From contig OZ037765.1 of NCBI GenBank assembly GCA_964035545.1, positions 10,736,698 through 10,800,697 of the forward strand: a stretch of 64,000 nucleotides of DNA, in the 5' to 3' direction. The stretch comes from Bugula neritina (Eukaryota > Animalia > Bryozoa). The notes beneath the pieces are model-generated. The model was not told the DNA's origin, searched no databases, and was given only the letters and a program-made list of their open reading frames with translations. Made by a program: the position numbers and the translations under genes. This document shows, piece after piece, positions 14,007 through 25,894 of this stretch (position 1 is the first letter of the stretch; the number at the start of each line of letters is the position of its first letter).

Positions 14007-14649
14007 CTAGCTCAATGTTGGGGTGTATTTTCTCATTGGAGCACTGCCCATCCGGTGTCCACTAGCACTGTGAAGTTGTCTTCTTTCTGTCAAATACCAA
14101 AGGTAATACGTTTATGTTACTCTATATTGATGACATAAGCTTAAAGTAAGTTAGCAATTTATTTAAATCAATGATTGCTAGAGTATTTTAGTAGTAGGTA
14201 TTGTTTTAATGTCTAAAACATTGAAAACGTCTAAATAGAACGTGAGCAACATCTATCAAGGCTGAAACAAGAATACTGCGCAAGTTTAAAACTTCAGAGC
14301 AGTAGTAAATTTTTCCTCACCTGTAAATCTTTTGGACATCAAAGATGACTTTGGCCTGATAGCTTTGGCAGCATTGGGCTCAACTTTGGCGCAGTTTCTT
14401 TCATTACTGAAAATCAGTTAGAAATTATTATCGATAGGCAAACAACTATTTGTACCAAATGTTTTCATAATGTGCTGAGATTTAGACAATTCTTTCTTCT
14501 GTTATTAGATAAAAACTGTTAGAGCATTATATGATGGAACAGGTCTACTAAAGTTGCGTTTATACCTCTGCTGAAAAAGTACCGAGTTTAAGTTAATAAT
14601 GCTTGTCCAGGTACCCCTTTATAGTCAAACTGAAACTCCTTGAAATCAT
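14007..14649 (-). CDS. Possible 66-aa basic spliced ORF, or 5'UTR exons of TMEM249
   Basis: Segments 14615-14649, 14321-14406 and 14007-14086 join in phase as MISRSFSLTIKGNERNCAKVEPNAAKAIRPKSSLMSKRFTERRQLHSASGHRMGSAPMRKYTPTLS*. The middle exon has strong TTTCAG/GTGAG signals; the first donor is weak. Confidence 0.3.
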
Positions 14650-15619
14650 ATTGATGCGGCTGCTCACTTTCTGAAATTGAAATTTGACTCGCATAATAGC
14701 TATTTGATGCCCTTTGTAAACGTCGTGAATTAGTGAAGCGGAAAGCATAAAAGCGATAATTGAAAAGGCGTAGGCTATATAATTATAACCGTATAAGTAC
14801 GTTGTCTAATCGCCAAAGTAATAACTAAATAACGATGTTTACAAGGAGTTATTACTCCTATTCTAAAATTGGCCGATTAAGTTATCACAGTACAAAAATT
14901 TCAACGAGTGCCTTTTACAATGCAATGCAACTCGGAGAAATTTCAACCCGGCCAAATTGAATTTTTGACCGAAAATCGTGAAGGTATAAACGCAACTTTA
15001 ATTTTTATAAAAAGAAAAAGAAATTATTTTATAAACTGAATATTTGTACAATATCTTACACCATAATAATATTTTGTTAGTGTAATACAAAAAATTTAAA
15101 CAGTGTAGAACAACAAACAAAACAATATACTAAACTCATAAATAATTGTTTCAATTCTAAACAAGATAACTTATATAACAGCAAAAGAAAAACTATTGCA
15201 TTTAAAATAGCATGAGTTAAACACTTGCTATGTTGAATTTATTGGTGGCAGTTTGTGGGGCGGGCGTGTAGAGATGGAGCGCTTATACTTAACACAATCT
15301 CTCAACCTGGGACACACAAGTACAGCTACATTGTGCATATCAGATGTCATGTTTTGTGTTACTTTTCAACTCTTTTCTTATTTACAACATCACATGCATC
15401 TCTGGCTTTAACACCAGTTTATAATAAGACTTTTAGCTAGAGGCATTTTAAAACCTCCGTTGAAAAGAATAAACTTTTGTTTGCACTAAAAATAGCAATA
15501 GGCAGGGAAAAGTATAACAAAACAATTTCATCAAAGTTCTTTCAAAAATTGTCAATTTATTTTATGAGTGTAAGCTTGATTTTTTTGGATAAAGATATTA
15601 GTAAGACATTAAAGGGAGC

Positions 15620-15765
15620 AGCTGTGATCTATAATCTAGTAATTAGAGCACTGGCTTAGTAGACACAATGTAAGTAGTTTGAATCCAAGTAAAGTCTATT
15701 GGTGATGTTAGAAAGGGCATTCAGTCAAAACTGCTCTTTTTCCACAATAAAAAACAAGTCCCTAG
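15620..15765 (+). mobile_element. Possible decayed tRNA-derived SINE fragment
   Basis: Degenerate A-box (TAGTAATTAGAGC) and B-box-like GTTTGAATCC (~15677), followed by a GAAAGGGCATTCAG motif and an A-rich tail. Confidence 0.3.
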
Positions 15766-15863
15766 CTTGCCTTTAATACCCTTTTCACCAGGGGTTCTAA
15801 CAGAGATATAGACATAAACCCACCTACCCACCCAATCATAAAACATTAGCCTGATTAGATATT

Positions 15864-18800
15864 CTATGTATATAAAGGAAGACCAAAGCGTCTATCATCG
15901 TCATGCCAGCATAAGTTTTGAAGCACTTCAATAATATGCAAAATTTCTAAGAAAAGACTTAGTAAATTTAAATCAAACCTTTTCAGATAGAGTGGATGAG
16001 AGTTCTCAGACTCAGAAACAGCACCTTTGTTAGAATGAGTATGAGACGTACTACCAGGCAGCACTGTAGCATTTATCACCGAAGAACTTGGACTAGAGTC
16101 TTCATACCCAGAGCTGTGTTTGTGTGGAGCATTTATCCAAGCCACAGCCTAAATAAATAAACAGATCTCAGTTAGAGTGAGAGTTTCAAAAGTAATCACA
16201 TTAATGAGGTGGTATGCTTCCAATTGTATGAGGTATCTTTTCATTACCTAATGCATGCCAATATTATATAACAAAGATTTCAGACTAATTGAGAGTTGTC
16301 TACTCAAAATTATGCTAATCCTTGTGGTTTGTTTTATCAACATAACAAAGCTGTCCTAGTGTTAAGTCTCACTTTATGAAAATATTCTCTTGTTGTTTAT
16401 TTTTGTGTTGACTGCTAACATAGAAATTAAAAATAAACTGCTACCTTTTCCTTTCTATTTTTTTATAAAAGAATTAATAAAATCTAAAATCAGCTGATGT
16501 TTTCAAACATGGTACGTTGTGACAGCCGTAAAATTAGTTACTTAAAAACTCACAGAACAAGCTACATTTATCTTGGTAAAAAAATAGCAGTATGGGTTTG
16601 ATTTTTTATTTCGTAGATGGAGCATTTTTCAAAGCAAATGGCTTATGAGTTGCCAGCATCACAAAAAAACTAATTTGCAATTGTTTTCAAATTGCTTTAT
16701 GATAAAAAAAAACAAACACTTGCCTTCCCCTTGGAGTTACACAAGACTGTTGTACACTCTGGCCCAGTGCCCCACCTCTCTTTCTCCGATCTTACAAACT
16801 GGTTTGGTGGTTGGTGTAGCTCGGCAGAACAAAGGCCTGAAAAGACGGTAATGAAAGACCCGGCTCTGAACGTCAACCTGTCAGGAAAGGTGAACTGACT
16901 AACTGGTATTCCTGAAACGTTTTGACGTATCGAGTACTTCCCAAGCTCAATATCCTAAAATATAACAAATTTATAAATGGTGTATTGTTTACTGTCAAAA
17001 CATATTTTTATGTTAGAAAAATAAGGCATGCACATATTATTGTGGATATTTTATATCAACCATTGCCTATTACTTTTAGAATAATTATTTTTCTATGAAA
17101 ATTAGCAATTGGTTAGCAACTTGCTATTTCAAAAATTGTCATGCAAAGTCTTATACACACACGCACACACAAGCACACACATATGCAATACACATATGCA
17201 ATACACATATGCAATACACATATGCAATACACATATGCAATACACATATGCAATACACATATGCAATACACATGCATACACAGACAGACAGATTTTATGT
17301 GTGTGCCTGTGCGTGCCTGTGTGTGCTTGTATGTGCCTGTGTGTGTAACATAGAAATAGTTGCAGTACGTGTATGTTCAACAGCTAGTATAACATGGTGA
17401 TAAAACAATTACCATTGAGCCAGAGCTGTTGTATAGTATAGCATATCTTCCATCAGGACTCACTTCATGAATGGTGAGAGACCCCAAAGAGCTGTCAAAG
17501 AGCATTTCAGATCAATAGAATATTATATTTTCATTTATATTATATAATTATAGAATAGAATAGAACACATTATAATATTATTCATACCATTATAAAATAC
17601 AATACACTATATTATATAATTTATATTATCCTAGCCAACAATATACATGTAACCCCTATTAAATCTTTTATATAATTATATAATAAGAATAGATCAATAT
17701 AGTATATTTTAATTATCTTTTATTATTGTAAAATAGAACACGTTGTTAAAATTATTTGCATTATCGTATAATATAACATGTATATTATTAAAGAATAGAA
17801 TGTGTTATAATCCATACACTGATAAAATCCAATATATTATATTACTACTTATACTATAATAATTATGTATTGAAAGCACAATATTGTCATGATAACACCT
17901 ATAACAAAAGTATTGCAATGGTCATTTCAATGCTTAATGAAGGCATTTCAAATAATTGGAGATGTAATGTTGTATAGTCAAAATGCTATACATATGCATT
18001 GCAGTTTATCCTCAACCAAGCACCCAATTTACTAAAGAAAAAAAAAGTATACGCACCTCTTGGGCATAGAATTTGGCAGCTTTCCTGACAGACAGCTTCT
18101 GGTTCCTGCACGTTGAGATGCAGAATATACTCTTTCATAGCCTGGTTTCTGCTCAAACAGCTCTCTGAAGTAACTCTTCCCTTTACCGAGCTCTTTAGAC
18201 GGCACCCTATGTTGTTTATTGAGTGTAACCTTAGCACTCCGCCCTGCTGCAATAGGCAAACAATATATCTTCAAACTAAATGCTTCATCAGGTGTTAACA
18301 AAATAGTGCATGTTTTACTTAAATAACTAAAATGGTATAACCATTATTACCCTTATAATTTTGTTGAGCGTGTGGTAGCCTATATACTTTACATGAGTTG
18401 CTAAGTATCAAACACCACAAATCAACTAATGGAATTACACTTTAGATTTAAAAAAGATAAATTTAGAGAATCAGCTACAAGTTGTATGTGAAAAGCACTA
18501 ATTATGTTAAACTAAAGTTTGTAATTAGGTTATAAGTGTGTTTTTGTATTTATGAGCAAATGTTAAATTTTATTATTTACTGTGGGATTCTAGTAAAGAA
18601 ATTATCTAAATAACTTAATTTACTGTTAACTGCTAAATTATATAAGTCATGAGCTCAGACCCATTACATAATATTAGCAAATAACCTTCATCAAATGACT
18701 TACTCAATCTTGATTACAATTCACATGATAATAAGTAATAATTTACATAATTTGACAATATTTTGCACAAATACATCAAATATTCATCACAAATTTATAC

Positions 18801-21800
18801 TTTATTCTAGAATGTTTGATGGTGATAGAACTATGTCTACACAAAGCAACATCTGGTGTACAACAGAACTGTATAGGTGAAAGCAGTAGTCACAGCTATA
18901 TGGTAGATCACTAAATACAAACATAATATTTTGTGTTACAAGGTCATGTGATGACATGGTTGTGGGCCACACAAATATGATGATAATATTGGACACATAA
19001 CTCCAATTTTCACAATGCTACGGAAATCTACTGAATTATACTACCTCATCTCTTAACCTGAAATCAAGAAAATGCTGATTAGTAAAACACACATTAATAA
19101 CACAGCTGTTTCTGAGAATATCAATAATAGGTATTAGCATTTGAAAATTACTCGTAATTTTTGTACAGCTATAATATAACTACTGATAATATATGTAAGT
19201 GTGTACAAACAACTAGTTTTATGTGAAGCATTAGATAAGTGCAGCATATGAGAAACCATCTACCAGCTAATTATTGAACCATTTGCAAAATTCAATCAGG
19301 TAATTAGCTGTTTAAGAAGAACAGCATTTCTGCACACAATGTTTATTGCTTGTGGTCATCGAACATCTTGTAATGACAATGTTAAATTAAAATATTGTCA
19401 ATTTAGGCTGTGCAGCGACAACAATATTTTTTAAGGTGCCTTTAGAAAGCATATTAAAGAAAGTAAACAAATTTGCACTAAAATTAGTTGTTAATTATGG
19501 TGAAAATTGTATCAAATAGTTTTGCTTTTCAGTACAAATCAGGTAATGTTTGTAAATGTAACTATTGTAAGCAGAAGAAGTTGCTTAAATAAGCTAAGCT
19601 AAGCTACAGACATGTTGGGTTGTAGACCTACCGGGAGCTGATTGAGCTCTACAGCTCAAGTTTGTATGCTCCTCAGGTATCAGCACCTCGTAACCAGTTG
19701 GTGGTTCATGTTTCTCAGAAGGATTAAACTGAGCATAGTCTATAGCTGGTAGTGGAGAACACAACTCCGAAGACTGAGATGCTTCATCAGAAAAAACTGG
19801 AGCAAATTTGCTGTAATTGCCATTTTGTGTACTTAGGACAGGCTTTCTACAAAGTTATAATTAGCGTATTTCACACAACAAGTGATGCAGATGGTTTCTA
19901 TAAAATGTAATCAGCAAAGATTTAGACACAATAAAATTACAACATACTTCATGTCTTGCTCATACATGTTGTAGTAGGGCAGGTCAATGGTATTAGCAGC
20001 AGGTAGTTGCTCTGAACTTCTCAAATCAGCCACTGTGGTAAATAGTTTATGCTGACAGTCATTTAATTTACTTTTAACTTCTTGTACTTGTTTAGCAATG
20101 CTGTCCTTCACAATGACTAGACTCTCTTCCGCAGCTCGATTAGCTTGTTCTTCCAGTGTCAACTAAAATAAATTCAATATATACATGCACACATATGCGT
20201 GCATGGGTGTGTGCATGGCTGTGTGCATGGGTGTATGCATGTGTGTGTGTGAGTGTAAAGTATCACAGTTTTTCCAAAAGCAATCGCGTGTTTGGTTGAG
20301 TTATGACATGAATGCTGAAACTGATGTGTGTGCATGAGTAGCTCAGATTTTATATTTTAAATGCACAGTAATAAGAAGAATCTATATGTGGTTGTAACAA
20401 TTATTGAACTTTGATTTTAACATTTGTACTACAGAGCCTATTTGTTACTATAAAACTATCTAACTATTGTACATACTACACAGTAATATTATTACTTTCT
20501 CCTGTCATATAGAAAAGTAAATACTAAGCACACGATCAGGAATAATAATTGGTTTTCAAGGGAATTTTTCAATAGTTGGATAATAATTGGATAAATAGTT
20601 AGATAATAATGGTTGTATTGGGTTGTTAAATTGTTTTAGTTTCTGTTTTTCTTAAAAGTTATTTCTGTTATCTAATTATGCAAAGAGATCTCTGCAAGAG
20701 CTGATATTTGATATGTACCCATGCATTATCCTGAGGCTTTATAACAGCAATAGACAGATTAATGACAAATACAAATTAAGTTATAAACTTCACTGCTTAG
20801 TTTAAAAAATATGAAAAATTAATTGACATCACAATAGTAGCCACATGAAATAATGACTTCAAGTAGAATTATGAGCAGCATTATTAAAATAGCAGGCTAC
20901 ACTTTTATTCAGTTTCTTGATAATTAACTTTCAATGTGACACGATGTGTATTTCAACAATGTCAATATCACAAATGAAAGGAACACTTGGATTTAGTTAA
21001 AAGCTAACAAAAATGTCAACAATAGAACAAACAGTGCCATAAATATGAAGGAAACCTTAAAGTAGATTTTTCTAAAATTCAGTTTTCAAGTCTGCTCGTT
21101 TAAGGTAATCGCTGACTAAAATATTTACCATTACAATAAAGACAGTAGGCTATGTGTAAACAGAGTTGTTACAAAGAGAGAGATGCACTAAACAGAGTAG
21201 CAAGCATACATACCTCTCCTTGCAGCTTCCTGATTTCTAGATTGAGCTCTTCGATGCAATCTGTTAGTCGAGTATTCTCAGCCCGAGCTACTTCAAATGA
21301 CTTTCTGTTTTTCTCTATTTTTGTCTTTAATTCTGATAACTTCAAAGTATAGAGCAGTTGAGGTTTGTAAATAAGTCTCACATTAAATTTACTGGGAATC
21401 ATATATAACATAAACTAATTGTTGATAAGATGGCAGAATAAATGCATACTTTAATTGTATTTTAAAGTTGTAAACTTTTTCAACATATCACTGCTATACC
21501 CTGCACTTCAAAATACTGCACTGGCCCCCATTGCACTGCATGCACTTTCCTACAGTACACTGTAATGCACTACACTAGACTACAGTGCACTACACTGCAT
21601 ACCTAACACTACACTACACTACTTCGCCACACACTACACTACATTACACTAACTACGCTCCAATGTACTGCACCACACTGCACTATATACTTTACACTAA
21701 AATACATTTCACTACCCTACACAATACACTAGAATATATTACACTATAGTCTATGCTACAATGCCCTACACTGTACTGCACTGCTCTTTATAACCGCTTT

Positions 21801-24800
21801 TACTTGTGTGTACTAATTTGTTTAGTGTAAAACTGTGGGTGCTACCATCTTCATCAAAACTAATTTTAAAGAAGATAATTTGTATTTATTTGAGTGGTTT
21901 AACCATATCGCACAATTTGAATGAAAAACCAATGAACATTGAGAAACAAAAAACTTAAGCTATTTAGAAAATAGTATCTCCAAACACACGGAGTTGTTTC
22001 ATCCAACATCTAGATTGTGGTAATAAATCACCCAATACAAGAGTGTAGGCTAGAGGAGGAACAACATACTTTGTTATTAGCTGCCAGGTTTGTATTGAAC
22101 TTGCACTCAGTCAGCTGCCTCTCGCAGTCACGAGTAGCAGACGTTAAATCTCTCAGAGCCAGAGCTTTAAGCTCTGTCGACACTGGTGAAGTATTCAATT
22201 CGTTCTCCAACTGAGTGACTGTGTCAGATGCAGTAGCTAAATTCTCCTGCAACACATTCAATGTGATACCAACTATAGCTACTCTATGGGTAACCCAACT
22301 GTTAGATATACTTGCTATGAAACCTTTGTAAAGGTACATTGATGTCAGAGCATGTAGTAACAGCCTATTGTATTAATGTTATGTGATTGAGTGCTAGACA
22401 CTGTGAAGAACAATGATGCCATCTAGTTATATAGCTATACCGAGGTAAATAAACTCCAGATGGCTTCACAGAATGCTCACTGGTGAGTGATAACTTTTCA
22501 ACTCGATACACTACAGGTTACTAATATAACTTTGACAAAGTAGTCACAAACAAGTATGCAATTATATGCAAAACAATAAAACTTATCAAAGTATCTAACT
22601 CAACTGATAAACGTTAAAAATATTTCTTTGTAAGAAGACGATAATTCAGTACCAGCACTTATTAAAATTGTTTGTATTTGTTTATAAAAAAAATTAATTG
22701 CATATTTCAATAAGAACTGTCAAGTTTTTTTTGGTCAATAAGTTAGGGCGTCAATGTGTCAATCAACTTTATAGACTAAAGAGTATAGAATTGTGATAAC
22801 TACCTTTAATAGTGTAACCTGTTGGTTTGCTGTTTGAGTGTTTAGCTCTAACTGATTCTCTAGAAGTCTTATTTTTGATTCAAATTCAGTATTGTGGTGA
22901 GAAATATCTTCCAGTCTAAAATTATAAAACACCAATTAGCGTACACTTGTGACAAAACGCAGATTTAACAACATTAATATTAAAATACTTACCCTTAGTA
23001 TTTAAATATCCTATATAATCAAACCGCATGAAGCAATGGCTATTTGTATGAAATCAAATGTCTAACTGGTGTTCAGAATAACAAATTACATATTATAAGG
23101 TTTGTTACAGTCTACTCATTAAACTTTGAAATAGTTAAACTTACAAATCGAAATTCTTTTCACTACAGAAAATACAAACTTAAAGGGTGTACAAAAGTTC
23201 AATTAAATTAAAGATCAAATAGTTTTTGAGATGGAGCCGGCTTTTTTAGTGTGCCTGGTAATTGCCACCTTGGAGCTTTTATTAGAGAATTTATCTATTC
23301 AGTATGTGTAGCGCAAAGAGCTTTTGTTTCTATTGTCAAACTTCACCTCAAAAGGTATTTGGTCACAAGAGCTTGTAATATTTGTTTGCCTTCATCTCTA
23401 ACCAAGCATGAACAAGATAGATATTTGATAACAATTTATTTACGTAACATATTGTACCACTTGTAAGAATGCAGCACATATTTGCAAAAACATTCAAATG
23501 CATAAAACATTCTGCAGTAGCATTTATGTTACAAGTATACTTGAAGGTGAACATTAGTGCATACATATACATGTAGTCAAAGAAACAATATTTTAATGTA
23601 TAGAAAATTGATGTATGTATGCATGTTTACTAGAGAGCCGAGAGTCTTATTCAAACGTGTAGCTTATATGCACATTTTATTTAAAGCCCATAGACAGCAA
23701 CAATAATATTTATGCCTTACAAAGACAGTCTTTGCATGGTTAGCAGTGCTTTTAAAATACAGGATGGATGCCTAGTATAAATAAAGAGCCTACCTTCTTT
23801 TCATGTCACAGTTTTCATACAGTGCTTTTTTCAGTTGACTAGCACTGGTACACCTGGCCTCTTCTGTTTGCTGTCTTTCCATCTGCAGTTTATTTTGACG
23901 AATGGCATTTTCCTTCCGTTCAATAGCATTCTTCAGCGCAGATTTGTGTTGTTCCACTGCAGTATTTCTATTTGCCTGAAGCTGGATTCTAATAAAACAT
24001 AAATTGAATGTATTATGTGTATAATGACTCCATCTCGATCAATTAACTTACAGATAGGATATTGTTGTATCAACTTATCATATTCTATTTCCAAATTCTA
24101 TTTCCAAGTGTCATAACGTAAGAAATTCATAATTGTGTGCTTAAAAGTTACTTCTCTGACCATAAGAATAAAATTACGTGTTCTCAATACTACCTACTCA
24201 CTACAATACTATGCTATAGTATAGCATGCTATACTCTGCTTTGCTATACTATGCTGTGATATACTGCACTATGTTAAACTATACTATGCTATATGACACT
24301 ATGCTATGCTATACTATGTGATGTACTATAACATACTGTGCTATACTATGCTATTTAATATGCTATAATATATTGTGCTATAATGTACTATGCATGCTAT
24401 ACTGCATTATCCTATACTATAAAAATGCTAGACTATGCTATATTGTCCTATACTATAATTTGTGATATAGCACTTACTGTTGCCGTAGATTATCTATCGA
24501 TCTTGTGATAGACGCCTTATGGAAACCACACTCCGAAATATTCGAGTTGATATCATGCAACTGTGTCTGACATTCTTGAATCTTTCTTTCGTATAAATTT
24601 TTTAAACTTACTATTTCTTTTTCCATCTCATCTGCAGTCTACAGCATTTGATTGTCAAGTATATATGTGTTGGTGACCAGCAGTTTCAATTTATCAAAGA
24701 ATAAAGCAATTATATATAACCAGAGTCGTAACCATTGAACTGTATAAGTTTCAGTTCAGTGGTTGTAACACTATTCTTATGCTAATCTTGCATGCAATGC

Positions 24801-25894
24801 AAAGTATAAGCATAGGAGGAAATTGCTAATGCAAGTTTACTTACATGATTAAAGCCAGCAGTTTCAATGTGTACCCCTCCAGTTTTTATTTCTTTTATTT
24901 TGTGTATGTAAGAAGTTGCCATGGATGACAGATTCCCATCCTCAGGCTTGTAAAAAGGGGCAATCATGTTGCTCTCAGTTTTTCTATGTCACAACCATTC
25001 ACTAGATAATATTTATAAAAGAGTTATGTGTACAGATTATCAATGTTCAATAATTTCACACATTTCTTACATTCACAATAAAACACTATAATGCTATAGT
25101 CTACATAGTCACTTTCTATCTCTTCATTATAATATTGGCTTAAAACTGACTTTCACAAGCATAATGAGCACTATAAGCTAATAATTTACTGCCTTAAAAC
25201 AAAAACACATAAAATCAAACACCAAAGCTGGTCACTTGCATTAGGTTATAGTTTTTATTGCTCTGTTTCCACCAATCACCATAGTGTTACAAGGAGGTTT
25301 TACAAATCACAAATGAAATTGCCATATATATGTTTTGTATTTTAAATATTATACTCAAAAACTTCTAGTGTAAGCGTGAACTTAGTTTTACTAAAAATAT
25401 TTTTGCTCATAATGTGCTTTGTGTCATTATAAAAATCGGAAGTATAGTGATCATTTAAGTAATTATTAGCAGTAGTCAAGTATAACAAAAACCTGGTGTT
25501 CTAGTAATTTAACAAACACCTTAAAAATTATTTAACTTTTTAAAAACTGTTTGGTATTCCATTATAAGAAAATAAAGCATAGCAGCTATTACATAGAAAA
25601 AGTTGAAACAGTATGTGATAGAGCTTTTTATTACTTTGTGAAAGTAGATTTGTGAAAAAGTGTGAAGGCGGAAGAGACTGAGAACAAGTAAGCATAAAAC
25701 ACTAACATTACTATATATGCAAACCAAAACCATATTTTTTAAAACCACTATTATTGATACCCTAAAGTTTAAACCTATATTTATTACACTTTAGTTTAAG
25801 ACAAATATGTATGCAGTTCAGAAATATTTGCTCCTTTGGCACAATAGGGAGAAAGTCCTTGGCTAGCTTACAAAATTTCATCAGGGGTTGTCAT
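15864..25894 (-). CDS. Divergent intermediate-filament-like protein: coiled-coil rod plus LMNTD1/IFLTD1-type lamin tail domain, ~715 aa, 13 coding exons
   Basis: In-phase exons: 25872-25894, 24845-24983, 24478-24638, 23794-23988, 22804-22915, 22070-22246, 21214-21339, 19948-20162, 19632-19846, 18057-18246, 17413-17491, 16724-16954, 15864-16148. The tail domain reads SSLGSLTIHEVSPDGRYAILYNSS..IELGKYSIRQNVSG..FTFP..ITVFS..HQPPNQFV..WGTGPECTTVLCNSKGKAVAW. The exact 3' end is uncertain. Confidence 0.8.
17181..17271. repeat. 13-bp minisatellite (ATATGCAATACAC) x7 between CA-rich and TG-rich tracts
   Basis: Seven exact copies counted. Explains the repetitive ORFs at 17095-17400. Confidence 0.95.
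21520..21790. repeat. Degenerate pentamer repeat (TACAC/TGCAC-type)
   Basis: tacac/tgcac/tacat units in 5-nt phase. Confidence 0.85.
24200..24470. repeat. Degenerate pentamer repeat (ATACT/ATGCT-type)
   Basis: atact/atgct/gtgct units in 5-nt phase, running up to the donor at 24477. Confidence 0.85.

Follow-up and report, generated by a model that had tools for sequence, protein, structure and literature searches.

The window, i.e., the whole 64,000-nt stretch of Bugula neritina DNA analyzed here, very probably holds a real, single minus-strand gene of 14 exons that encodes a rod and lamin-tail protein of about 719 aa, a fast-evolving bryozoan copy within the nematocilin/cilin/LMNTD1 family. 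The evidence comes from transcript-like contigs of a close relative, from the order in which the exons fall on a family profile, and from comparison with a conserved paralog in the same genome.

A spliced gene of 14 exons

The coding sequence of our model runs from 24967 down to 14007 on the minus strand (719 aa), with an unbroken frame over the 14 exons and introns that are all GT-AG or GC-AG. All searches were performed exon by exon, and frame, length, and split codons were computed from the coordinates. Only one RNA-like run (X1) contains the gene, stored as contigs; its RNA nature is a guess, and its source is a close relative that is 4-8% divergent in exons. A 1713-nt X1 contig carries 21339-21218, 20162-19951, 19846-19634, 18247-18057, 17491-17415, and 16955-16722 with the introns removed and then runs into the exon at 16148, while a second contig joins the exon at 22.9 kb to 22248-22070 and continues to 21339. 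The joints in these contigs link exons 4-5-6 and exons 6 through 12, the last reached by the overhang of the contig; with a contig word depth of 64.7, the gene appears to be transcribed and spliced in the relative. The initial annotation had proposed that short coiled-coil open reading frames and lamin-tail exons splice into one frame. Such minus-strand reading frames and three lamin-tail exons are indeed present, and the X1 contigs, which skip the introns, bear the splicing out. The junction from 19632 to 18246 is exact in the X1 contig once the alignment slack at the splice sites is resolved.

The two ends of the earlier model did not hold. Its 3′ end at 15864 is intron read-through, and the C-terminus read to that point was rejected because conserved exons were found further 3′, at 14406-14321 and 14086-14007, which places the end of the 14-exon model about 1.9 kb beyond the earlier one. 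At the 5′ end, coding sequence within 24968-25894 found no support. An additional 5′ coding exon near 25.8 kb was considered and discarded, as it is without profile support and the heads of family members are short.

Full-length rod, eroded ends, and lamin-tail domain

A family profile was built from 24 full-length relatives, which carry Pfam Filament, and scanned against 2005 six-frame segments of the window. The exons of the model were among the best of these segments, colinear except for exon 5, and their lengths fit the profile spans. In the rod, exons 1-4, 6, and 7 are colinear on family HMM positions 22-361; exons 2, 6, and 7 are significant among the 2005 segments, and none of exons 1, 3, and 5 is significantly similar to the family when taken alone. 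The resulting architecture consists of a very short head, coil 1A, L1, a long 1B, L12, and coil 2.

Exon 1 (24845..24967, minus strand as all exons below; aa 1-41) provides the start codon, with an in-frame stop 21 nt upstream of the ATG, followed by the very short head, an eroded coil 1A (NLSSMATSYIHKIKEI), linker L1, and the donor GTAAGT. It falls on profile positions 22-53 with 0.4 bits only, yet is colinear. NLSSMATSYIHKIKEI occupies the place of coil 1A and, like the family consensus, has 37 residues from Tyr to Tyr, and no conserved IF helix-initiation motif beyond NLSSMATSYIHKIKEI was found in coil 1A. Exon 2 (24478..24638; aa 42-95; AG/GTAAGT sites) opens coil 1B with EKEIVSLKNLYERKIQECQ, matches positions 60-109 (E 1.7e-5, rank 2 of 2005 six-frame segments), and shows a heptad occupancy of 0.80 (p<0.001 versus shuffles); EIVSLKNLYERKIQECQ, described earlier as a lamin-like start of coil 1B, indeed matches the 1B start of the family (E 1.7e-5). 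Coil 1B continues in exon 3 (23794..23988; aa 95-160), which contains no Pro or Gly and matches positions 111-172 weakly (2.7 bits) but colinearly, and in exon 4 (22804..22915; aa 160-197), which matches positions 173-212 (E 0.064). Residues 1-30 of the B. neritina model P0017 match exon 3 and run on into exon 4, where residues 30-67 match at 94.7%. The overhang of an X1 contig at 22248 links the 3′ end of exon 4 to exon 5.

Exon 5 (22070..22246; aa 198-256), covered by the X1 contig over 22070-22248, would comprise the 1B end, linker L12 (NTSPVS), and the start of coil 2. It was assigned to the rod by position and length only: its 59 codons equal the length of the matching exon of the conserved paralog (profile 210-268), while its sequence shows no significant family similarity and its own best profile match falls at 111-173. 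Exon 6 (21214..21339; aa 257-298), where the 1713-nt X1 contig begins, encodes the middle of coil 2B, including the LNLEIRKLQGE of the initial annotation. It matches profile positions 264-313 (E 2.7e-5), is 55% identical to the Watersipora exon, and is hit by tblastn with residues 266-315 of the mollusc relative P0007 (E 6.7e-4). Exon 7 (19948..20162; aa 299-370), also with a joint in the X1 contig, encodes the remainder of coil 2B and matches positions 311-361 (E 1.7e-4).

This arrangement revises the length of the rod. The segment LNLEIRKLQGELTLEE, previously taken for the end of coil 2B, aligns to profile positions 299-316, in mid coil 2B and some 70 residues short of the end. Coil 2B actually terminates at the eroded QLPAANTIDLPYYNMYEQD, in exon 7, the exon following that with LNLEIRKLQGELTLEE. 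The short rod of about 283 aa had resulted from this mistake, and the real span from the 1A Tyr to the 2B end is about 349 aa versus 346 in the family consensus, i.e., full lamin-type length. Rod length and exon lengths are kept to within 3 residues. The claim that the rod-end motifs are eroded was upheld, with 1A reduced to NLSSMATSYIHKIKEI (0.4 bits) and the 2B end off consensus. The family, the conserved paralog, and Watersipora read LPLKAE(I/V)E.L(K/R)AL..EE at the 2B end; in the window gene this end contains a Pro, the helix-termination consensus of the YRKLLEGEE type is absent (LPAANTIDLPYYNMYEQD versus LPLKAEIEALKALLEEEE in the family), and the HMM alignment stops before it. Pfam Filament and LTD profiles applied exon by exon gave no significant match, the single match being Filament to exon 2 (15.1 bits, E 0.018), misplaced at profile 127-178. 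We did not retain this blank as support for a degenerate rod: the conserved paralog scores nearly as poorly, so the exon-wise test has little power and was dropped as evidence.

Behind the rod, exon 8 (19632..19846; aa 370-442) encodes a Pro/Ser-rich linker, with X1 joints at both ends and a 98% match to P0017 residues 140-199. Exon 9 (18057..18246; aa 442-505), also in the X1 contig, carries the family motif LGKGKSYFRELF, which falls on profile positions 489-516 (lGqgkDyfdelF); its earlier likening to vertebrate LMNTD1 is justified, as the motif it matches also occurs there. The lamin-tail domain follows; on the family HMM its core, in exon 11, is preceded by exon 10 and followed by exon 12. 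Exon 10 (17413..17491; aa 505-531; X1 contig) holds the region of the first strand (GSLTIHEVSPDGRYAILYNSS), matches positions 547-571 (E 0.0025), and is 65% identical to the Watersipora exon. Exon 11 (16724..16954; aa 532-608; X1 contig) encodes the Ig-fold core, which matches the lamin A tail 1ufg at E 5.4e-9 and the family profile at E 1e-33; the intron after it is GC-AG (donor GCAAGT). From 16722 the overhang of the X1 contig continues into AVAWINAP of exon 12 (15979..16148; aa 609-665; profile 651-712), which encodes the end of the domain (AVAWINAPH) and a Ser-rich stretch and whose donor after YLK is placed from P0017 and the frame. Exon 13 (14321..14406; aa 665-694) is predicted from P0017 residues 293-329, matched at 78%, with fitting splice sites and phases. 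Exon 14 (14007..14086; aa 694-719 and the stop) carries the conserved C-terminal motif HSASGHRMGSAPMRKY and matches profile positions 774-792, the Watersipora locus (E 6e-9), and, by tblastn, Watersipora P0002 (E 4.7e-6), amphioxus P0034, and nemertean P0015.

The motifs held in common with the family are GxGxxYFxxLF, AVAW, and RMGSA..RKY, the last present as RMGSAPMRKY in exon 14. GxGxxYFxxLF precedes the tail domain in the window gene and in its nearest named relatives, which are LMNTD1 proteins, and G.G..[YF]F..[LIMF]F occurs in 36 of 150 listed relatives, turtle and mammalian LMNTD1 included. The 719-aa model ends in TPTLS, in agreement with the reported lack of a C-terminal CaaX, and pattern matching found no NLS-like basic cluster, the sole K/R cluster being KNRK inside the rod (coil 2B). 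As to the conserved C-terminal 'nematocilin tail domain' (Kollmar 2015), the window gene has RMGSAPMRKY, profile positions 793-853, present in the conserved paralog, have no match in the window, and the Watersipora ortholog ends at the same C-terminal place as the window gene.

Family membership and a duplication within bryozoans

The exon 11 search, run against 1.84 billion proteins, returned 173 relatives with E<=0.001. The named ones include LMNTD1 of turtle, lizard, bird, mammals, Bulinus, Watersipora, and B. neritina, and others, from an annelid, a nemertean, a hemichordate, amphioxus, and a coral, are named 'lamin-like'. Each named match that was looked up is LMNTD1 or a rod-plus-LTD protein without CaaX. 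The best full-length relatives match Pfam Filament (E 1e-11 to 1e-35) and LTD, and full-length relatives from six phyla carry rod and tail in a single protein. With the tail exon, invertebrate family members score 76-85 bits, turtle LMNTD1 64, mammal and bird LMNTD1 50-57, lamin A 39, and lamin B1 25. The colinear profile matches and the LMNTD motifs uphold the proposal of an LMNTD1-family protein that bears an IF-type rod.

Nematocilin/Cilin proteins (Hydra nematocilin, Nematostella cytovec, Mnemiopsis Ml-Cilin, and bilaterian nematocilins) likewise have no NLS, no CaaX, and a very short head, and the closest full-length relatives (mollusc, annelid, nemertean, hemichordate, amphioxus, and coral) have the same architecture. 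The rod of the window gene is nevertheless far more diverged, with the 2B end motif lost and the distal C-terminal end (consensus ...PPVVSSW) missing. Vertebrate LMNTD1 (IFLTD1) has in common with it the lamin-tail domain, the preceding GxGxxYFxxLF, and the following AVAW; the tail-exon identity is only 36-46%, and the window gene is a bryozoan paralog rather than a one-to-one ortholog. The idea that vertebrate LMNTD1 is a tail-only protein is true only for mammals and birds, which differ from the window gene in lacking the rod: turtle and frog LMNTD1 retain a full rod (Kremnyov et al. 2025), and the turtle protein (P0041/P0183) is among our matches. In turtle LMNTD1 (762 aa), as in the window gene, Pfam Filament misses the long helical N-terminal part. 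The suggestion of a distinct cilium-linked IF class, with the full-length form ancestral to LMNTD1, had already been published (Kollmar 2015, nematocilins; Kremnyov et al. 2025 preprint, "Cilin"). Because full-length rod-bearing family members have been described, the window gene is a further, rapidly evolving copy of a known type and does not define a new class of filament.

The conserved paralog lies on another contig of the same genome (C2, about 19465872-19479857; B. neritina KAF6019498.1 'LMNTD1'). It has the same architecture and, through most of the rod and tail, the same intron positions, and its 1A motif (FKELSGRLYAYIKKMRELR), 2B end (LPLKAEVESLRALIAEEERR), and long C-terminal region are all preserved. 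Compared with the annelid protein, the tail exon of the paralog reaches 65% identity and that of the window gene 50%, and the paralog's summed rod score against the family profile is about 210 bits versus about 70. In a tail-domain tree of 77 columns without lamin outgroup, a long stem leads to a clade (SH-aLRT 100) of the window gene, P0001, and Watersipora, and the C2 copy is the sister of this clade (87). The window gene and the C2 copy are products of a duplication within bryozoans, the former fast-evolving and the latter conserved, which overturns the view of the window gene as the ancestral state of LMNTD1: it is the derived copy. A search of the genome with family members found only the window locus and the C2 paralog and did not match an LTD-bearing locus on contig C8. 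The Pfam LTD search of the genome recovered the C2 paralog, a single exon on C8, and nothing else; it missed the window's own tail exon and was set aside as a count of LTD genes, being too insensitive exon-wise. Furthermore, codon changes relative to the X1 transcript (26 synonymous and 9 nonsynonymous) point to purifying selection on the window gene.

Alternative readings and possible role

The locus could instead be divided between two neighboring genes, with exons 1-7 encoding a coiled-coil protein and exons 9-14 a rodless LMNTD1-like one. The NCBI annotation of Watersipora shows such a division, with a 471-aa model that stops shortly ahead of a 245-aa 'LMNTD1-like' one; mammals and birds have a rodless LMNTD1, and an internal promoter could yield a tail-only isoform. 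However, the Met at which the 245-aa model starts lies within the conserved YFDEMF, and the open frame continues on its upstream side, so the division appears to be an artefact of annotation. Moreover, a single X1 contig, with all introns out, spans exon 6 through exon 12 and thereby places rod and lamin-tail domain in one transcript, as had been proposed, and rod and tail form one protein in the full-length relatives of six phyla. We thus regard two genes as highly improbable. That the protein is an ordinary protostome cytoplasmic IF or nuclear lamin outside the LMNTD1 family seems hardly plausible, even though the order of domains, rod then lamin-tail domain, is identical, several relatives are automatically named 'lamin-A-like' or 'lamin-B2-like', and solved lamin tails match at E 5e-9. 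Lamins A/C, B1, and B2 do have a homologous Ig-fold tail, with that E value to lamin A, a lamin-length rod, and a long coil 1B, but they differ by an NLS and a CaaX, both absent from the window gene by pattern match, and they rank far below LMNTD-family proteins as its relatives. The window gene has a 135-residue linker with LMNTD-specific motifs between rod end and tail domain. The best 150 relatives listed include every LMNTD1 looked up and none with a typical lamin C-terminus, and family members recovered the window locus and C2 in the genome, not the C8 LTD locus.

The fast evolution of the window copy could also be read as decay, i.e., a pseudogene in the making whose rod erodes since the conserved C2 copy does the work. 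A rod score about a third of that of the paralog, the loss of the 1A and 2B end motifs, the Pro in the 2B end, and the absence of the distal C-terminal family region fit such a course. Against it stand the intact frame over 14 exons with canonical splice sites, transcription and splicing in the relative (word depth 64.7), the 26 synonymous versus 9 nonsynonymous changes, rod and exon lengths conserved within 3 residues, and the ortholog retained in Watersipora, and we consider it very unlikely. Our preferred reading is that of a functional, fast-evolving copy, in which, after duplication, the 1A and 2B motifs eroded and the distal C-terminal end went missing, while exon structure, rod length, and purifying selection were kept. 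The rod would form a parallel coiled-coil dimer in the cytoplasm, and by analogy with published cilins the protein may act in ciliated cells or sperm. Given its eroded rod ends, it probably co-assembles with or modulates the conserved paralog rather than building filaments alone. There is a modest chance that, freed from assembly constraints, it was neofunctionalized into a coiled-coil protein that forms no filaments itself and serves the conserved cilin as a partner or capping subunit; if so, it would represent an early invertebrate stage of the route by which mammals and birds independently arrived at rodless LMNTD1/2.

This work corrects, with RNA support, the gene model of a locus misannotated in public records, both in the split Watersipora models and in B. 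neritina KAF6037584.1, where six exons are left out and the reading runs on into an intron. No new class is opened: LMNTD1/nematocilin proteins with a complete rod, and their connection to cilia, had been described before. In bryozoans, the cilin/LMNTD1 family is represented by two genes, of which one is conserved and the other evolves fast, and for research on cilium-associated IFs this pair of paralogs constitutes a natural experiment on the rod features needed for assembly.

Gene model and transcript support

On the minus strand between ~25.0 and 14.0 kb, in AT-rich animal DNA (GC ~0.30-0.33 around the gene), lies a series of short open segments, which are Pro/Gly-poor and coiled-coil at first, then lamin-tail-like. 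They form a model of 14 exons (numbered 5′ to 3′) with a coding sequence from 24967 to 14007 (-), encoding 719 aa; sequence searches were run exon by exon, and frame, length and split codons were obtained by coordinate arithmetic. Exons 1-3 were set from their splice consensus, their reading frame and their colinear order along the family profile, and the order of exons 3, 4 and 5 is backed by the public B. neritina model KAF6037584.1 (P0017), which reads through them in that order. An in-frame stop precedes the ATG by 21 nt, no support was found for coding sequence upstream of 24967, and the heads before the Filament domain in relatives span only 10-27 residues. At the other end, exons 13 and 14 were set with P0017 as a guide, together with conserved C-terminal matches in Watersipora, amphioxus and a nemertean, with fitting splice sites and phases. 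The C-terminus of the initial annotation (...RFDLNLLSLF... to 15864) comes from reading on into intron 12, and exons 13 and 14 lie further 3′. KAF6037584.1 itself ('hypothetical protein EB796_004109', 347 aa; window 14010-23882, -) is a faulty model of the same gene. It begins within exon 3 and runs on into intron 5; exons 6, 7, 9 and 10 are missing from it, together with half of exon 11. Compared with the genome exon by exon, it shows 87-100% identity, and a second B. neritina protein, KAF6019498.1 (P0004), 85-98%.

Splicing was read from X1, a public run kept as contigs and labelled metagenomic RNA-Seq, whose RNA nature is only guessed and whose source is a relative 4-8% divergent in exons. 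An intron-free X1 contig of 1713 nt joins 21339-21218, 20162-19951, 19846-19634, 18247-18057, 17491-17415 and 16955-16722, and its loose end continues into AVAWINAP at 16148 (exon 12). A second contig leads from the exon ending ...TANQQVTLLK (22.8 kb) through 22248-22070 to 21339. Small offsets and 'letters between' at the joints are alignment slack, resolved before splice sites were read; with this done, all introns are GT-AG, bar one GC-AG after exon 11 (16724/16723; donor AAG|GCAAGT), confirmed by the spliced contig, and the 19632-to-18246 junction proposed initially is exact. Because intron-free contigs join their exons, the rod together with the lamin-tail domain (LTD) is carried by one mRNA, as read from a library guessed to be RNA and from a relative. 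Direct RNA evidence from these contigs covers exons 4-11.

Low-depth X1 contigs also lie on intron sequence (18876-19531 and 21310-21546; word depth 3-8 versus 65 for the spliced contig), which fits unspliced precursor (pre-mRNA) or DNA carry-over in the library. Introns 10 and 6 (17116-17400 and 20166-20356) both contain an imperfect, CA/TG-rich microsatellite, ACACATAC-like, that yields long His/Thr/Cys-rich pseudo-ORFs on both strands; read mapping left out both as repeats. Intron 2 (24200-24470) consists mostly of tagcatagtatag-like units in an imperfect tandem array.

Family membership and the rod

Among solved structures, the central tail exon matches tails of lamin A (E 5.4e-9); it has 173 relatives at E<=0.001 among 1.84 billion representative proteins. 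Relatives named 'LMNTD1' come from Bulinus, B. neritina and Watersipora, together with vertebrate LMNTD1 of turtle (762 aa), lizard, rhea, beaver and seal; uncharacterised or 'lamin-like' ones come from gastropod, annelid, nemertean, hemichordate, amphioxus and coral. Of the eight best long relatives scanned, six match Pfam Filament across most of the profile or its full length and also have the LTD, and a typical lamin C-terminus is absent from every long match among the relatives listed. The initially noticed LGKGKSYFRELF is the family motif G.G..[YF]F..[LIMF]F, present in 36 of 150 relatives listed, from invertebrates to mammals. A transcript-derived family member of 660 aa (P0035 / P0158 / P0159) has a GKGKDYFEEMF motif and an LTD, and its N-terminal part is unrecognised by Pfam Filament, likewise that of turtle LMNTD1 (P0041). 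Rod divergence past Pfam's reach seems to recur in the cilin/LMNTD1 family.

The window has 2005 six-frame open segments of >=20 aa. When all of them were searched with a family profile built from 24 full-length relatives, exons of this gene made up 8 of the 9 best segments and 10 of the 13 best. Their matches are colinear: exon 1 at profile 22-53 (E not significant), exon 2 at 60-109 (E 1.7e-5), exon 3 at 111-172 (weak), exon 4 at 173-212 (E 0.064), exon 6 at 264-313 (E 2.7e-5), exon 7 at 311-361 (E 1.7e-4), exon 9 at 489-516 (E 0.078), exon 10 at 547-571 (E 0.0025), exon 11 at 574-651 (E 1e-33), exon 12 at 651-712 (E 0.22) and exon 14 at 774-792 (weak). The exception is exon 5 (59 codons), placed by position and length alone, its own best match being at 111-173. 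The exons are as long as the profile spans, and the distance between the 1A Tyr and the 1B-start Tyr is 37 residues, the consensus value. Heptad patterns exceed shuffles in exons 2, 4, 5 and 6, and the 326 residues of exons 2-7 include 3 Pro and 2 Gly. Given the colinear matches, exon lengths, Tyr spacing and heptads, the rod is homologous to those accepted by Pfam as IF rods, a link that is transitive via the family.

The segment initially taken as the 2B end, LNLEIRKLQGE|LTLEE, aligns instead to consensus LTAEITSLEKKLSSLEQQ (profile 299-316), and the family rod end is LPLKAEIEALKALLEEEEKRL (364-384). At this position the better conserved paralog has LPLKAEVESLRALIAEEERR, the Watersipora ortholog LPLKTECAGLRALIDEERER and the window gene LPAANTIDLPYYNMYEQDMKK. 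Since the true end lies beyond that segment, the rod extends through exon 7, and the short rod of the initial annotation gives way to a span of ~349 aa from the 1A Tyr, versus 346 in the consensus. In lamin A it is ~342 aa. The erosion of rod hallmarks stands, with the termination motif lost and the initiation motif badly eroded.

Paralog, ortholog and selection

The gene is duplicated. A genome search with family members found exactly two loci, the window gene and a conserved cilin/LMNTD1-family gene on another contig, C2 (G000:C2:19465872-19479857, +; read as L013:4872-10000 plus L014:1-8857, over 19.5 kb). The C2 gene has the whole architecture, with a full rod (1A FKELSGRLYAYIKKMRELR, 2B end LPLKAEVESLRALIAEEERR), LTD and long conserved C-terminal region, and its public model (KAF6019498.1, 366 aa, 'LMNTD1') is without the whole rod. 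Rod intron positions are the same in both genes, except that window exon 7 is two exons in C2. Against the family profile, the C2 rod exons sum to ~210 bits versus ~70 for the window gene, and the tail exons score 154.6 versus 113.5. In a tail-exon tree, which is indicative only (77 residues, few columns, no outgroup, quick search), the window gene, P0001 and Watersipora 'LMNTD1-like' form a clade (SH-aLRT 100) on a long stem (0.76), with the C2 copy as sister (87).

The rod of the Watersipora ortholog scores 122 bits over profile 174-383 versus ~45 in the window gene, so a large part of the erosion is particular to the Bugula line. At the Watersipora subatra locus (L015:1-18352, OY755158.1) NCBI annotates two genes, a 471-aa model and then the 245-aa 'LMNTD1-like', whose start Met falls within the conserved YFDEMF motif; upstream of this Met the reading frame stays open, and rod exons come immediately before it. 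The two models seem to be a single gene that the annotation has divided, or else to reflect an internal start.

Codon changes between the window gene and the X1 transcript comprise 26 synonymous and 9 nonsynonymous, of which 9 and 4, respectively, fall in rod exons 6 and 7. As synonymous changes outnumber nonsynonymous ones, the window gene is under purifying selection, the direction being clear though the count is partial (40/99 differences covered).

Relation to cilins and possible role

Nematocilins were defined as a rod, an Ig domain plus a C-terminal region that is conserved (Kollmar 2015, PMC4448529). Kremnyov et al. 2025 (bioRxiv 10.1101/2025.08.21.671432) named the group Cilin, recognised LMNTD1 as the human truncated form, described full-length LMNTD1 with a rod unrecognised by InterPro in turtles and frogs, found neither NLS nor CaaX in the group, and reported expression in ciliated cells and spermatids in ctenophore, oyster, sea urchin and human. 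Because these studies already describe the group, the initial proposal of LMNTD1 as a distinct, possibly ciliary, IF class agrees with published work and is a rediscovery.

By analogy with the family, the window protein would form a coiled-coil dimer in the cytoplasm and function in ciliated cells or sperm. Because it has lost the end motifs of 1A and 2B, we also raise, as a rather doubtful proposal, that this copy is unable to assemble by itself and acts on the conserved C2 copy or together with it. What is new here is the corrected model of a divergent bryozoan paralog.
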